Shown here: positions 2,451 through 63,375 of the stretch, in pieces
Layout: every line of letters begins with the position of its first letter
Position numbering within the stretch: the stretch's first letter is position 1
Assembly: GCA_946965045.2 (NCBI GenBank)
Contig: OX337234.1
Coordinates: forward strand, 1,984,001-2,048,000
Direction: 5' to 3'
Source: Epithemia pelagica
Lineage: Eukaryota; Protista; Bacillariophyta
DNA: 64,000 bases
Notes under the pieces: generated by a model
Databases searched by the model: none
The model's input: only the letters and a program-made list of their open reading frames with translations
Told to the model about the DNA's origin: nothing
Program-made: the position numbers and the translations under genes

Positions 2451-5400
2451 TTAAACAAAAAGCATCTCGTCTCTTTCTATTCGCTCTAGCAGCAGTTGAG
2501 CTTCATGCAACCCAGGATAGTCGTCGTCAATGTTTGACTCGCGGTAAATAGATAGTGCTTCATCCACCGCTGCATGTGCCTCGGCAAACTGACAATTTCT
2601 CAAGTGGATGCTTGCAATGGTGACATTGACTTCAGCAATCACCGGGTGCCCCTCATCCAGCACTTCTGTGCTTACACGGAGGGCTTCAGAGGCACATTTT
2701 AACGCGGTACCAAAATCCCCTCGACCAACGAGACTACTTCCTTTGGTTGCAAGCGCCCTTGCGTAGTCAATATGCCCTTCACTTAGTGATTCTCTGCGAA
2801 TATCTAGAACGGTGTCACATATTCTCATCGCCTTCTTGAAGCTGTCACGTTTTACGTGGATCTTCGCAATCTCGTGCAATGTTGTTGCTTGTAACGGATG
2901 ATCCACACCCAAAAATTCCAATCGCATGTAGTAGCATTCTTCAAGTGTTTTCAAGGCAGTTCCGTAGTCCTTCTTTCGAGCGTATGCACAACCAATAGCG
3001 TGCAATGTTTCTGCAATATTTGGGTGTTTCAAACCATGAATTTTCTGCTGGCCAGAAAGGACTTCGCCAAAATGTTCAAAGGCAGTGTCCAACTCGGAAG
3101 GATATACTGCGAACATAATACCTATTTCACGACGTGTTCTCAAGGCTGCAGGATGTTCTGGACCAAGCAAAGACTTTTGAATCTGGAGAGCATCCTTCAG
3201 CGCCACCATTGCCGTATCGTAATCACAGATTGCAGCTTTAACTACCCCAATATGGTACAAGGTCGCAGCCACCGTTTCATGGTCACCACCAAGCTCTTCG
3301 CGTAACGCTGAAAGGGCACCCTCGAGAAGGCCAAGAGCTTCGTTCCATAGACCCAATTGATACTTTACTGTACCTTTCAAGACCTGGGCTGTGGCAAGGT
3401 ATATGTTGTCACATCCAAGACTGCGTTGGACAGCTAGCGCTCGATCATAATAGTCGAGAGCTTCCATGAATAAGCCCGCCCGGGAACTAAGCATCCCGAG
3501 ACTGTTCAAGGTTGTGGCGAGATCTTCACGAGAAGACGTCTGTTCGGAGTCATTTTCTAGAAATTGAAGCTTTTCTTCAAAGAAAGCAATTGCCATTTTG
3601 TACGACCCCCGTTCTTCATGTGCTCTCCCAATAACTTCAAGCATACCTGCTTCAACAAACGTGCTGTAGTCGTCTTTCTTCGATTTAATGGTGGACAGAG
3701 CATTTCGCTCTCTGTAGTATACCGCGCCGATTTGACACAAAGTTTGCGAAACAAGGGGATTGCCTTGTAGATCGTCTCCTAAACATTCCTTCAATACACG
3801 CAACGCTTCCTTGTGGCTTTCCATAGCCAATTTAAATTCATTCTGCATTGCCCGGACTGTGCCAATGGAATTTAGAGTTTTGGCACTTTCTTCGCTGTAT
3901 TCTCCATACACATCATGTTCAATGTCGAGCGCCTCCATGTAGTACGCCAGACTAGACTTGTATTGCTTCTGGTGGAGGTACAAATCGGCCAAAAAGTGGA
4001 GATTGTGTGCAACTTCTTTGGTTGTCTCATTTGCTTGATGAATTCGGAGCGACTCGGAGCTTGATTGAATGGCTCCATGAATGTCCCCACCGCGGCTTTG
4101 AAGCACTGCAAGACGAAACAGCGTTGAAGCTAGTTCTGGGTCATCAGAATCCCGTTCGTGACGCTGGTCCACTAGAATAGCTGACAGTTTTGAAATTTCT
4201 TGTTCCATCGAGTCTTCTCTATGGTTGACCCTGCGTGATGATGATGCCACAATCATTGCTTGAAGATCGTCAGTTTCCTTAGGGTCCTCTCCGACTTCTG
4301 CCGCAGCTTCATTGGCTCCAAGCGACATGCCTGCAAAGCTTAGTTTGTCCTTGGCTGCAACTCCAACATTTGAAGCGTGATCTCTTTCCTCGGCTATGGG
4401 GGTATCACTGGACTCATCATCCGAGACCACATCCAGAGGAGCCGAGCGGACTTTGGAATGAATTGACCGGGCGGACAAGAAACCATCCGCGACTTCAACG
4501 GCCTGCGAAACAAACTGGGATGGAAACCATCTGCCAAAGCCCTCGGCGGAAACTCCCCACCACCATTCGTTACTCCGCTGCCATGTTCGAGATCCATCGT
4601 GGAAGACAAACGTAATCTGGGATACGTCATCCCACGAGTCTGACGGTATCTCGAAGGTTTTGATGGGTCCATCGAAATTGCTTTCATCATCGTGATACTC
4701 TTCCTCACGCTTCAACACAACGACTGGTGTGACGATTGGCTCTTTTTCCTCTTCTGGTAAGGACTCAAAGCCTCGCCGTGGTCTCCGAAAACCAAGCGCA
4801 AGCTTTGCCATTGACTTGGATGTGGTTGACTCTGGACTTTTCACGGTCTTTGTGGATCCTCCTTTCTTTCTTGGAGCTGGAATCCGAAGTGCTCTTGATT
4901 TTCGCCTGTCATACGAGTCCGCCGTTTGCGATGGTCTCAGGAGAGCATCTGTTTCGGCCAAGTCTTTCCGCGGTGACAGCTCCGGACCCGTCTCTAAATT
5001 GTTGGGAACTCCTTCTTCCGGCCCTTCGACAGAAAATTTGCTCAAATCAAGAGCGGAAGTGGCACTTGAACTCAGCAAGCTAGAGGAAAGATCCGAAGAT
5101 GAAAGTTTAATACCATCGCGGCGGTGCCCTCGCTCGTCTGGTTCCTCGTCTTTTAAGCCATATCTTGTGTTGTCGAGCTTTCGCCTAACACCATCATCTG
5201 CTTCCGCCTCATACGACTGGTCTCCTTTTCCATCCGATAATGGGTCCGGTTGACTTAGCTGGGAGCCATTATGAGAAAGCTCCTCTGTCATTGGTGTTGA
5301 CGACGGATTGTTGGTAATGGCATCGTTGTCCTTGCCCTCGCTTTCTTTGGCATTAGGAGTTACTGGCGTGGAAGCTTCGTCCTGTTCCCCTTCATCGTGG

Positions 5401-57185: not shown

Positions 57186-57616
57186 CCTCTTGCGGCATTC
57201 TTGAGTCTTTATATTATTTCTTTCATCTTTGTGCACGTCAAACAACCCTGATTTGTGACTGGATGGGTCCAGCTCCAACGACAGATGAGCGCAAATTATT
57301 TCCATAGAGCACTAAAACATTATTATTTACATACCGTTTTCTCCATTACACTTTCATGCATCATTCTCTAAGGACTAGAAGTTGGACAACCTTCTAGGTT
57401 GATTGGGAGGGGAATACTCCTGAGAGTGCTTCGCTCTAGACATGAGATAGCAAGGGTAGCAGGCTGTGCGCGGATTTTTTGCTTGACGTTGACGTCGCTC
57501 GTATTTTAAACTGCGTCATTCTCGTCATCAAGGGCGAAGAAGCAGAAGAGAAACACTGTTGTGAATCATCGACCTTGTGTATGCTTTGATCTGTTGAAGG
57601 CTTGTTCACTTCAAGG

Positions 57617-58537
57617 ATGGTTCGTGCTGTCACTAGTGTTTTGCTTGCTTTTTTGGTGGTCCAACTTGTTGAAGGTTGGACCTTCCAACCAACGCCTAGT
57701 GCATCCAGCGCGTCAGCTCTATATTCTTCGTCTTCGGCATCGATTGGATATGAAACTACAACCAAGGCCACCCTTTTGCATCTCGGGGCCGTTTTGGATC
57801 GAGGCCAGGCTTACAATCCAACCTCGGGAGAATATTATGCAGAACGGATGGAAGTGGCTCGTGAGAAGATTCGGTCGTTCTTGGAGGCCAATCCAGGAAA
57901 AGTTCCTACCAAGATGGAAGATATTGAGGGAGAATGGGAATTGGTCCTGACAACCGTTCCTCACGGAATTTTCCGTAGCAGTCCCTTCTTTTTGGCCATT
58001 CAAGAGGCTTACGAAGTATATGCGGAAGAAAAAGAGGCCTATGGTATGCCCAAAGCTCAATTGTTTTTCAAATTGCACGAACTTCAAACCATGTCCTGGG
58101 GTGTGAGCAAAGTTGGTAGAGTCGCACAACACATTACCAAAGATTACATTTTCTCCGAGTTTGATACGTCCATTTTCAGCCTGACGGTGATACCCATTCT
58201 TGGATGGTTCAAATTACTCCCTACCTTTGGTGGATGTGTGGTGACTGCGGCCAAAGCCGAACTGGCAGACGAAGGTGTCCTTAAAATGTCGGTTGACTAT
58301 ACAACCGCACGGCCCGTGCCCGGTTTGTCAGGCTTGGGAGAGTGGATATGGAGTATTAAGGTTCCTGTGGGTGCTGTTTGGAAATTGTTGCCATGGAACA
58401 AAGGTCGGGAGCCTTTGTGTCAAGTGTGGAACAGATACTGCGACGAGGATTTTCGAATTGTGGAAGATCGGTCAGGAGACTTGTTTGTCTACACACGGCC
58501 TCTTATGCCACGAGCTCTTGACTTGGCAGAAGATTGA
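57617..58537 (+). CDS. PAP/fibrillin-like plastid lipid-associated protein
   Basis: Signal peptide ending VEG-W; lipocalin-like motifs IEGEWELVLTT and YCDEDFRIVEDRSGDLFVYTR. Confidence 0.7.
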   Translation: MVRAVTSVLLAFLVVQLVEGWTFQPTPSASSASALYSSSSASIGYETTTKATLLHLGAVLDRGQAYNPTSGEYYAERMEVAREKIRSFLEANPGKVPTKMEDIEGEWELVLTTVPHGIFRSSPFFLAIQEAYEVYAEEKEAYGMPKAQLFFKLHELQTMSWGVSKVGRVAQHITKDYIFSEFDTSIFSLTVIPILGWFKLLPTFGGCVVTAAKAELADEGVLKMSVDYTTARPVPGLSGLGEWIWSIKVPVGAVWKLLPWNKGREPLCQVWNRYCDEDFRIVEDRSGDLFVYTRPLMPRALDLAED

Positions 58538-58922: not shown

Positions 58923-59478
58923 TTAGATTTCATCAGCGTGTAGGAGCATGTTCGGTATGGACTCCTTTACAGGAAACCGGCGTCCCGTTCCGGGACAGAT
59001 CAGTGCCCCATCAATCAGGTGAACATCAAATAGCACTTTGTGAAGATTAGCCTCCAATTTTTCGTCCGCAACAGCTTCTCCTGTCAACGCTGAAACTTTG
59101 CTGTCATGTTCTTCACCCACTTCTGTTTGGTCGACTGCTGCCAAATCCTCCTGTTTCATCAGATAGAGTGGCAGTTCTTTTGGCAGCTCCGGTAAGCCTC
59201 CGGGAACGTGAGGGGACAACTCTTCCACGGCTTGTAAGATTGCTGAGTAGTTCAGTTTTGGGAGTAACCTCATCAACAAGTCCCGATTCACTTCCGACGG
59301 TGGATCTTCGACCTCGACTCGTTCCGCTTCAATTTTGAGGGGGTATCCATTTTCTGTTCTGAGGGAAAGTTCAGATGGTGAGAATAAATGAAGGAAACTT
59401 CCTCACAATCCATTGAAAGGAAGCATAAGCTTACCCCTTGACGTTTGATTGGAGATAATTGTGTGTGAGTATTCTCAT
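58923..59478 (-). CDS. TRMT112: Multifunctional methyltransferase activator subunit TRM112; exons 59478-59435 and 59358-58923
   Basis: The spliced product MRILTHNYLQSNVKGTENGYPLKI...LHKVLFDVHLIDGALICPGTGRRFPVKESIPNMLL has the hallmark Trm112 termini. Intron 59434-59359 (GTAAGC...CTCAG, 76 bp). Confidence 0.93.
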
Positions 59479-59669
59479 GGTGGGCGAATCCAAGACAGCA
59501 GTGTGAAGATCTCAAGCCTACAAAGCAATGGATGGATGATTCTCGCAATTTTTTCCTTGTCAATCAAAAGTACTGAACATACGGGTTATGAAGAAGGTCT
59601 ACCCCTCGAAGCTACCTAGGTAGCTACTCCTCTGGTTCAATGGTTTTGCATGCCGCAACAAAATGAGCC
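59479..59669. promoter_or_regulatory. Probable bidirectional promoter between TRM112 and N6AMT1
   Basis: 191 bp between divergent ATGs. Contains the perfect 16-bp palindrome AGCTACCTAGGTAGCT (59610-59625). Confidence 0.65.
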
Positions 59670-60485
59670 ATGGCAATGGCGTCCGACGACAGAATGGAGT
59701 GGAAAGAGCTCAACCTTGTGGCGGAAAAACGGGCAACGAATTCCCCAATTGCTCCCATGCCATCACTGTCTCATTTGACCATGAAAGACTATGATCAGGT
59801 CTATGAACCTGCAGAAGACACCTTCTTATTCTTGGATGCACTCCAGTTTGAGTTTAAGCAAGGCTCCCTCTTGCCAGTCGAAAGAGAACCCGAAACACCG
59901 TTTGTCGTGATCGAGATTGGGTGTGGATCTGGAGTTGTGAGCACCTTTTTCCGATCTCAATGGAAGAAATACAACTATTCTTCGAATCGATTGCAGAGTT
60001 ATGTTTCGGATATCAACCAAACCGCTTTGAAGGTGTCACTACAAACGGACAAAGTCAACAACTATACCAATGACAGTGATCCATCGCCGTTTCCACCTGT
60101 GGAAGCGATTCATTGTGATTTAGCATCTGCCTTGTTGCCTCGGTTGCAGAACCAGGTCGATGTCATTCTGTTCAATCCTCCGTATGTGCCGACCGAGGAT
60201 GACGAAGTCGTCACAGAGACGAATGAGGGAGGAATTTCCGCCGCATGGGCCGGAGGGAAAGATGGCCGTAGAGTCATTGATCGTTCCATACCGCAGATTT
60301 CACAACTCTTGCGCCGTCCCACAGGAGTTGCCTATTTGGTGACGGTCGATGAAAATCATCCATCCCAACTAAACTCCTCTCTTCTTGAGCCCCTGGAGCT
60401 CACCATGAAACCACTTTTTCGACGACGGGCAAAAAATGAGTTTTTGTCAATCCAAAAGATCACTTGGAAAGACTCAAAGACATGA
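59670..60485 (+). CDS. N6AMT1: HemK2/MTQ2 eRF1 glutamine methyltransferase (catalytic partner of TRM112)
   Basis: VYEPAEDTFLFLDAL, SAM motif EIGCGSG, NPPY, WAGGKDGRRVID and RRAKNE. Confidence 0.93.
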   Translation: MAMASDDRMEWKELNLVAEKRATNSPIAPMPSLSHLTMKDYDQVYEPAEDTFLFLDALQFEFKQGSLLPVEREPETPFVVIEIGCGSGVVSTFFRSQWKKYNYSSNRLQSYVSDINQTALKVSLQTDKVNNYTNDSDPSPFPPVEAIHCDLASALLPRLQNQVDVILFNPPYVPTEDDEVVTETNEGGISAAWAGGKDGRRVIDRSIPQISQLLRRPTGVAYLVTVDENHPSQLNSSLLEPLELTMKPLFRRRAKNEFLSIQKITWKDSKT

Positions 60486-61029: not shown

Positions 61030-62676
61030 CTAATTGTTGTTGTTGTTTTGTCCTTGATTGTTATTATTATTATTGTTGTTGTTGTTTCGTTTGTTTCCGG
61101 CATTGTTGCGACCGCGACCACCTCCACCTCGTCGATTGTTGTTGCCACTTCGGGCATTGTTGTTGTTATTATTATTGTTGGAGGGCGATGCCGCGGCTCC
61201 TGGTCCGTCATCGGCACCACCCTCAACTGCCGCAGCAGCAGCAGTATCCCCTCCTCCTTCCCCACTACTGGCGTTTTGTTGTTGTTGTTGTTGCGCGGCT
61301 TGCCATTTTTGCAAGAGTTGGACGGCCGTTTGGACATTGTCGGCATTGGCCCCTGTGACGGTCAAGGTATTGGATTTGCGTTGCTTGCGAATTTGACAAT
61401 CGGTTTTGCGAGCAATGTTGCGCAATTTGGTTTGAGAGGGCAAGGCTGGTAAGGAGACGGAGGCGGTCGTGGTGGTGGTAACCGTGGCGACCGCAGTGTT
61501 GTTGTTGTTGTTGTTGTTGGACGACGACGATGCACTGTTGGCAGCGGCGGCCGTGGTGGACGGGCTGGCTGTGGCATGGGTGGTGTTCAATGTTGTCGTC
61601 GGTTTGGCAGCTGCCAAGACCGAGGTTGGTTGTACGAGGAGGGTCATGATATTGGCCAAACAGGCCAGAACATTGAACAAGTCTCCTTCCAATTGAATCA
61701 AATCCATGCGTGGCATTGTGTTGTGGTTCATCATCATCATGATTGGTGGAGGAATCATGATGCGGACATTGGAATGAGCCGAAAAGGTGGCCAGCGTTTG
61801 GCCGTGTTTCCCGACAATGGTGGAATGTTTTTGACGGGCCACGGGAACATCCAAAATGACTTGATCCATAATCAAGTGTGAATTCTGCATCAAGAGACTA
61901 GTGGCCGACATATTGTGATGATGATGATGATGATGATGATGGCTGGAATGATGATGATGATGATTGTGAACGGCCGATCCACCCGGTGCCTTGGACAACA
62001 ACTCCACCAAGCCTTGGGCGGCATGACAGACCGCGGGAGCATCGGCTCGAATCACGACGGGCGTCCAGGCCGGATCAGACCAGTCCAATGGCGTAAGGGT
62101 ATGATAATCGGTCGCGGCCGCAGTGTTGGATGCTAACGGCGTTGTCGACGACAATGTCGACGAGGGCATGGCATTCAACGTGCCATCGGTGGTTGGTGTC
62201 GCGCCTCCGGTCGTCGTGGTGGTAGTAGTTCCAGAGGCGGCGGCATTGGACGCCATGGATTCGTGTTCCTTGGTGGCGGCGACTACCGAGACTCGCACCG
62301 GCTGATGCGTCGAGGCGACTTGGGCGGCGGACTTTTGCAAGGCTGCTACCGTTTGTCCTCGTCGTCCAATGACGGCTCCCACACTGGCAGTGGCAATGTA
62401 CAACGTCATAGTCATGGTATAGGGTGGCAACAAGACGGATTGATGATGCGTCGCAATGCATTTGACCATGCGTTCCCACGACGGTGCTGCTGCCGTGCTG
62501 CTGCTGCTGGTCGTTGCGGTGGAGGACGAGTGGCCGTCGGCGACGGCAAAGGGACAAATGAGTTTGCGAAGGGAAGCATCGTCCACAAGTTTGACCGGAT
62601 CCGATGGACTCTCGTCTCCAGTACCACCACCCATGCCGCTGGTTGTGGGCGGGGCTTGTACTTCGACCGACGCCAT
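61030..62676 (-). CDS. Multi-KH-domain RNA-binding protein with His tracts and N/G-rich low-complexity tail
   Basis: KH GxxG loops VGAVIGRRGQTV and IVGKHGQTL, plus a third degenerate KH (LRNIARKTDCQI...LTVTG). First ATG is at 62676. Confidence 0.85.
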   Translation of the reverse strand: MASVEVQAPPTTSGMGGGTGDESPSDPVKLVDDASLRKLICPFAVADGHSSSTATTSSSSTAAAPSWERMVKCIATHHQSVLLPPYTMTMTLYIATASVGAVIGRRGQTVAALQKSAAQVASTHQPVRVSVVAATKEHESMASNAAASGTTTTTTTGGATPTTDGTLNAMPSSTLSSTTPLASNTAAATDYHTLTPLDWSDPAWTPVVIRADAPAVCHAAQGLVELLSKAPGGSAVHNHHHHHSSHHHHHHHHHNMSATSLLMQNSHLIMDQVILDVPVARQKHSTIVGKHGQTLATFSAHSNVRIMIPPPIMMMMNHNTMPRMDLIQLEGDLFNVLACLANIMTLLVQPTSVLAAAKPTTTLNTTHATASPSTTAAAANSASSSSNNNNNNNTAVATVTTTTTASVSLPALPSQTKLRNIARKTDCQIRKQRKSNTLTVTGANADNVQTAVQLLQKWQAAQQQQQQNASSGEGGGDTAAAAAVEGGADDGPGAAASPSNNNNNNNNARSGNNNRRGGGGRGRNNAGNKRNNNNNNNNNNQGQNNNNN

Positions 62677-63375
62677 GGCAGTTTGTTGTCCTTGTCTCTG
62701 AAAATCGCTCAACCGCACCAAACCCAACCAAACACTCCCGAGTCCCGAGTCCTTAGTCCCGGATTGGTGCATAAAGCGCGTCCCATCTGCGTCCCTTTAG
62801 TGCGACTTCTCCAGACGCGCAGCACGACTCAAATCGATTCTGATAAAAACTTGACTCGTGTCATTGTCATAGCTCGGGTCAGACTCGTACAATACTTTTT
62901 CTGCACAATAGAAAGAAGACGCCCATTCCGAATTGTACTCTTGGACTACTACTGTTTGTGCGACCAGTTCCAACTCAACGGATCGGTACCGATTCTTGGT
63001 TTCTCCTCCAATTGCGCTCGTGGCGGGAAAAATTGATCCTGTCCAATCCATAGTATGGCCCTCGTGCCGACCGACTCTACAAGAGTTGTCTTTAGGACTG
63101 ACTCTTCTCACAAAATACCCAAGCCCCTTGTTCCTTGTTCTTTTTTGGCCAGAGAGGGGAATTGGACATTGGAATTGGAGCGACGCAGGACGAAACAGGA
63201 ACCACCACAAAAGCCAAACCAAGAAAAGCTGAAAAACCAAACGAACACACGATTGCTACACACAAATCCGAAGATTGCGTAATTTGGTGAAAAAGGTCGC
63301 GGTGCCAACTCGTTCTTCCTATTGTAGTTTCTCGTTGTCGTCGTTGCGTTATCAGTCATATACTACGGGGACACC

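Follow-up and report, generated by a model that had tools for sequence, protein, structure and literature searches.

A predicted Mtq2–Trm112 methyltransferase is encoded by a lineage-restricted head-to-head gene pair in diatoms

Introduction

The methyltransferase Mtq2 requires Trm112 for its solubility and activity, and Trm112 acts as a hub for which Trm9, Trm11, Bud23, and Mtq2 compete (PMC5372719). The closest described systems are the Mtq2–Trm112 complexes of yeast and Encephalitozoon and the human HEMK2/N6AMT1–TRMT112 complex, and much is already known about the biology of this enzyme. To our knowledge, TRM112 and MTQ2 are not linked in yeast or human. The reviews and primary papers on Trm112 that we consulted do not mention adjacency of the two genes in eukaryotes.

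Two kinds of linked arrangement offer a comparison. First, prokaryotic fusions between Trm112 and methyltransferases have been taken by their authors as a sign of interaction (PMC6144793, PMC5372719). Second, head-to-head gene pairs are common and, according to two general studies, tend to be co-expressed and conserved (PMC1487180, PMC7817982); the divergent histone genes are an example of such bidirectional pairs in eukaryotes.

Here, we describe a diatom locus in which TRM112 and MTQ2 diverge from a 191-bp spacer. The locus lies within a 64-kb stretch of DNA—hereafter called the “window”—and positions without a locus label refer to it. Both subunits are clear homologues of the yeast, Encephalitozoon, and human proteins. 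As in the prokaryotic fusions, the genome has a Trm112 module in physical linkage with a partner methyltransferase. The fusions, however, are single polypeptides of bacteria and archaea that involve several methyltransferase families, whereas the diatom locus consists of two separate, divergent genes. With the eukaryotic bidirectional pairs, the locus shares the divergent orientation, the short spacer, and the functional association of the products, although its conservation is shallow and extends over one clade. TRM112/MTQ2 joins this well-described class of functionally related head-to-head pairs, and is no new kind of system.

Results

The plus-strand gene (positions 59670 to 60485) is the MTQ2/HemK2/N6AMT1 coding sequence, an intronless single open reading frame (ORF) of 271 aa with a glycine-rich SAM-binding motif and an NPPY motif. 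The protein passes the Pfam MTS model, which describes a class I SAM-dependent methyltransferase domain, with a score of 24 against a cut-off of 23. In an alignment of 35 diatom homologues, the columns of E82, G84, and G86 in the glycine-rich motif are invariant, as are those of the NPPY residues N169, P170, P171, and Y172. The best solved relatives are human N6AMT1/HEMK2 and E. cuniculi Mtq2; the human chains solved with TRMT112 (e.g., 6khs and 6h1d) align over nearly the full length with an E value of about 1e-30. Among the NCBIfam models, the archaeal PRK14968 models and TIGR00537 (the HemK2/MTQ2 family) outscore TIGR03534 (PrmC), with all of the scores lying below curated cut-offs that are tuned to prokaryotes. 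By these comparisons, the protein is nearer to the HemK2/Mtq2 type than to the PrmC/HemK1 (Mtq1) type.

The minus-strand gene, TRM112, consists of two exons. Exon 1 (positions 59435 to 59478) starts with the ATG at 59478 and is a 15-codon exon, composed of 14 codons plus 2 bases. The intron (positions 59359 to 59434, minus strand) is 76 nt long, is in phase 2, and has GT..AG ends, with the donor GT at 59434/59433 and the acceptor AG ending at 59359. The first base of exon 2 (positions 58923 to 59358, minus strand) completes the split Gly codon and is followed by 144 whole codons, beginning at 59357, with the stop at 58923. The same intron position—the end of exon 1 followed by a GTA donor—was found in all of the diatom loci examined (L002, L014, L006, L007, L015, and L016).

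Transcript evidence for the intron came from Logan contigs of two small metatranscriptome runs (X1 and X2) of one sample, the only RNA runs that match the locus; these contigs cover a part of TRM112 and none of MTQ2. The contigs of both runs skip exactly positions 59359 to 59434, joining 59358 to 59435. The gap has CT..AC ends, which correspond to GT..AG on the minus strand, and the 76-nt intron is thus confirmed by spliced RNA. These contigs are 95–99% alike and both extend to 59503, so that the 5′ UTR of TRM112 is 25 nt or longer (positions 59479 to 59503, minus strand), a minimum extent because assembled contigs cannot reveal the true transcription start.

The protein searches with TRM112 were run exon by exon. 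The translation of exon 1 matches the conserved N-terminal strand of Trm112, of the M-R-L-L-T-H-N type, and exon 2 alone passes the Pfam Trm112p model (PF03966) with 23.5 bits against a gathering score of 22. TRM112 matches the human TRMT112 chains with an E value of 3e-14 in two aligned stretches, one N-terminal and one C-terminal, and exon 2 weakly matches the NCBIfam Trm112_arch model. At the C terminus, the C-P-x-x-G-R-x-F-P ... I-P-N-M-L columns are invariant among 20 homologues. The four-cysteine zinc knuckle of the yeast and archaeal Trm112 proteins was not found in the diatom TRM112 translation, which contains a single Cys in its whole length. As far as we know, the zinc site is likewise missing from the animal and plant TRMT112 proteins, and it does not define the eukaryotic members.

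As compared to the human proteins, the diatom subunits carry insertions that are lineage-specific: MTQ2 has 271 aa versus about 210–230 aa, and TRM112 has an acidic insert. On the strength of the N6AMT1 and TRMT112 matches and the two Pfam models passed, the gene identities named in the original prediction are both solid at the level of sequence comparison. The geometry that it described—an ATG at 59478 on the minus strand, an ATG at 59670 on the plus strand, and a 191-bp spacer with a 16-bp palindrome—is correct to the base.

How much room does this geometry leave for two promoters? The spacer (positions 59479 to 59669, no strand assigned) measures 191 bp from ATG to ATG, has a G+C content of 46%, and is presumed to be a bidirectional promoter region. 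This distance is far inside the 1 kb usually taken as the limit for bidirectional pairs, and the TRM112 RNA, reaching 59503, occupies a part of it. Since the TRM112 mRNA covers at least 25 nt of the spacer, no more than about 166 bp is left to accommodate both core promoters, and the promoter region is therefore physically shared. This geometry suggests that TRM112 and MTQ2 may be co-regulated to some degree. On the MTQ2 side, two out-of-frame ATGs at positions 59650 and 59663 (59650 to 59665, plus strand), 20 and 7 nt before the MTQ2 start, open ORFs of 42 and 43 aa, respectively. Consequently, either the MTQ2 leader comprises only a few nucleotides, or these are regulatory upstream ORFs.

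The perfect 16-bp palindrome AGCTACCTAGGTAGCT (positions 59610 to 59625, no strand assigned) lies 45–60 nt upstream of the MTQ2 ATG. The 64-kb window contains two perfect 16-bp palindromes, as compared to 1.02 expected from shuffled sequences, so that its frequency is at the level of chance. The corresponding spacers of two related species (297 bp in L002 and 277 bp in L014) contain no long palindrome comparable to AGCTACCTAGGTAGCT. We therefore rejected the palindrome as a conserved regulatory element, and it is probably incidental. The 191-bp spacer as a whole is unalignable with the 297-bp and 277-bp spacers, and its sequence is not conserved across the three species. A CTACTC hexamer directly 3′ of the palindrome (window positions 59623-59629) occurs as a tandem duplicate in a different assembly of this organism (run X3), in which the palindrome is intact. 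A sigma-70 and terminator scan of the spacer was disregarded as inapplicable to a eukaryote.

How far does the pair extend among the diatoms? The closest MTQ2 homologue, with 56% identity, is from Epithemia clementina. In this species (locus L002), TRM112 (ATG at 4703, minus strand) and MTQ2 (ATG at 5001, plus strand) are likewise head-to-head, 297 bp apart, and a locus from an ENA assembly (L014) has the same arrangement as the window with 277 bp between the genes. In a maximum-likelihood tree of 38 MTQ2 proteins, the three sequences form one clade with 99/95 support; this gene tree, built on a single 270-aa protein, was used in place of a species tree. The shared bidirectional promoter that had been predicted stands insofar as the two genes share a promoter region physically, with TRM112 RNA 25 nt into the 191-bp spacer, and the pair is kept in two other species.

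The neighbouring genes provide a measure of the background. A flanking gene encoding 311 aa (positions 57602 to 58537, plus strand), which is convergent with TRM112 and weakly matches Pfam PAP_fibrillin, occupies the matching relative position in both relatives, with 79% identity in L002 and 91% in L014. Because this neighbour is also syntenic, the retention of the pair is not clearly above the background synteny. L014 groups with Epithemia in the MTQ2 tree, yet its flanking gene is more similar to that of the window. Between the window and L014, the 91% identity of this gene contrasts with about 51% for TRM112 and about 45% for MTQ2, with large insertions counted; in this strong contrast of rates, it is the two subunits of the enzyme that evolve fast. 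On the other side, a KH-domain gene identified with Pfam (positions 61030 to 62772, minus strand) is convergent with MTQ2 and is syntenic in Epithemia (L002) only. The KH-domain protein contains long runs of Asn, Gln, His, and Thr.

The organism of L014 has a second intact MTQ2 copy (L003:4851-6326), which is 97.8% identical to L014:2994-4478 over 1.49 kb. Transposon genes of the DDE and copia types flank this copy, which retains only 149 bp of the spacer and is not accompanied by TRM112; it represents either a segmental duplicate of recent origin or a rearranged haplotig.

Outside this clade, MTQ2 has other neighbours. In the sister lineage (P0005, locus L097), no TRM112 lies in the 1.4 kb that precede MTQ2 or in the 6 kb that follow it. 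In the next outgroup, an Amphora coffeaeformis-like clade (L018:579-3627), argininosuccinate lyase (ASL, minus strand) is head-to-head with MTQ2 (plus strand). The same ASL/MTQ2 arrangement occurs in L098:2319-5936 and in a deep clade comprising L009–L011 (L009:3240-5771), L020, L019, and L022. Given its presence in both the outgroup and the deep diatom lineages, ASL/MTQ2 is likely to be the ancestral diatom partnership, with TRM112/MTQ2 as the derived state.

A broader survey gave the same picture. None of 80 metagenome MTQ2 loci has TRM112 nearby, whether searched by tblastn (24 TRM112 queries) or by applying a TRM112 profile to their six-frame ORFs; these loci have 28–52% identity to the query, with at least 1 kb of sequence upstream of MTQ2 in 47 and downstream in 49. 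Likewise, no TRM112 lies near MTQ2 at the locus of the oomycete Plasmopara. When the TRM112 and MTQ2 match lists were paired by sequence size, only the three already known loci were recovered. One further coincidence, the equal 1187-bp size of P0085 and P0211, is of a kind that chance would produce among short contigs. A weak TRM112-like tblastn match upstream of MTQ2 in L004 (E value of 0.002) was rejected, because it is antisense inside a longer plus-strand ORF and reaches a profile E value of only 0.11.

The original prediction had described an operon-like linkage and had itself proposed microsynteny as the test. This comparison limits the linkage to one small clade: it is absent from the sister lineage, from the Amphora-like and deeper diatoms, which have ASL/MTQ2 instead, from the 80 metagenome loci, and from Plasmopara.

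A different linkage was found in another diatom. In three contigs (L006–L008), MTQ2 (plus strand) is followed by TRM112 (minus strand) in a tail-to-tail arrangement, and about 100 bp separate the two stop codons. TRM112 is head-to-head there with the eIF2-alpha gene (L006:5923-7803), and the divergent TRM112/eIF2-alpha pair also occurs without MTQ2 in L015:3474-5465 and L016:3440-5444. At three of these loci (L006, L015, and L016), the TRM112/eIF2-alpha spacers measure about 350–490 bp. In the MTQ2 tree, lineages with ASL/MTQ2 branch between the head-to-head and tail-to-tail groups. Converting the tail-to-tail form into the head-to-head form would take two separate single-gene inversions; together with the intervening ASL/MTQ2 lineages, this makes two independent juxtapositions of TRM112 and MTQ2 the simpler reading of a tree that represents a single protein.

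Discussion

How did the two genes become neighbours? The account that we consider probable is that the subunit genes of one Mtq2/Trm112 enzyme diverge from a single short promoter region as the result of a derived, one-clade rearrangement that replaced ASL/MTQ2, that the pair is not an ancient or obligate operon-like unit, and that the palindrome is incidental. The locus would encode a predicted eRF1 glutamine methyltransferase, with Mtq2/HemK2 as the catalytic subunit and Trm112 as the activator. The head-to-head layout would have arisen once, in the common ancestor of the window diatom, Epithemia clementina, and the L014 relative, where it would have replaced the older MTQ2–ASL head-to-head layout. 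Since then, TRM112/MTQ2 may have persisted within a small syntenic block. Both core promoters would share one nucleosome-free region, and some correlation between the transcription of TRM112 and MTQ2 is likely. The rearrangement itself may have been neutral or mildly useful, and may have been kept since so short a spacer is hard to break without harm to a promoter.

Two considerations lead us to favour a neutral or mildly useful event. First, Trm112 must supply its other partners too, so that a strict one-to-one coupling with Mtq2 is no evident requirement. Second, the organism of L014 tolerates an additional intact copy of MTQ2. Against neutrality stands the tail-to-tail pair of L006–L008, which hints that the linkage of TRM112 and MTQ2 may be favoured more than neutrality allows.

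Did selection bring the genes together? On such an explanation, the diatoms repeatedly juxtapose MTQ2 and TRM112 because the co-inheritance or coupled expression of the holoenzyme is advantageous, the coupling being achieved by a shared promoter in the head-to-head form and by overlapping 3′ ends in the tail-to-tail form. We regard this explanation as doubtful. It draws on the two configurations in separate lineages—head-to-head in the window clade, and tail-to-tail in L006–L008, where TRM112 keeps its own eIF2-alpha partner—and on the intervening ASL/MTQ2 lineages, given which one adjacency inherited from an ancestor would not be the most parsimonious history. By our own estimate, two independent juxtapositions among about ten lineages would occur with a probability of about 1e-6 under random gene order (2/N per lineage, with N of about 1.3e4 genes). 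Moreover, Mtq2 is reportedly hard to express without Trm112 (PMC5372719).

However, the linkage is absent in most of the sampled diatom lineages and in all of the other eukaryotic loci. Several methyltransferases compete for Trm112, and the benefit of tying it to one partner is not clear; in addition, the second MTQ2 copy of the L014 organism is intact without TRM112 beside it. The events number only two and are placed on the tree of one 270-aa protein, and the data are also compatible with an adjacency in the common ancestor that small inversions and losses later altered. The tail-to-tail pair is the sole observation that hints at selection for linkage. The stronger statement, that MTQ2 and TRM112 were brought together on at least two independent occasions in diatoms and that this reflects selection for coupling a hub activator to one partner, strikes us as improbable. 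If true, it would be a rare eukaryotic example in which the genes of a two-subunit enzyme have clustered repeatedly in an operon-like way.

Less probable again is pure coincidence, namely neutral rearrangement in a gene-dense genome with separate core promoters and no meaningful co-regulation. The genome is compact (the window contains 38 ORFs of at least 180 aa, some of them overlapping, which we read as roughly one gene per 2–2.5 kb), other short divergent gaps are present in the window, neither the spacer sequence nor the palindrome is conserved, the pair is retained together with a neighbouring gene, and the L003 duplicate of MTQ2 keeps 149 bp of the spacer only. The argument in the original prediction that chance adjacency is unlikely overlooked the look-elsewhere effect over the many interacting gene pairs of a genome: with thousands of interacting protein pairs, we estimate that chance would yield about one adjacent pair. 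Against coincidence, full promoter independence is physically unlikely where fewer than 170 bp separate the 5′ regions of the two mRNAs, head-to-head pairs tend toward co-expression in general studies (PMC1487180, PMC7817982), and a tail-to-tail linkage exists in a second lineage (L006–L008).

Overall, TRM112/MTQ2 is a genuine bidirectional gene pair that is confined to one lineage. If the spacer drives both genes, then it is a natural compact (<200 bp) bidirectional promoter, usable for two-gene expression in diatoms, and the locus is an example of coupled enzyme and activator genes in a eukaryote. The comparison also indicates that divergent partnerships turn over fast in diatoms, with ASL/MTQ2 and eIF2-alpha/TRM112 exchanged for TRM112/MTQ2. 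This turnover is a warning against inferring function from single adjacencies.

One further neighbour of TRM112 was seen in the loci with the eIF2-alpha partnership. A gene for a THUMP and UPF0020 methyltransferase (Trm11/THUMPD3-like) lies at L015:1-913 and L016:1-757, about 4 kb and three genes from TRM112. Enzymes of the Trm11/THUMPD3 type also use Trm112, and the nearness of this gene to TRM112 is possibly due to chance.
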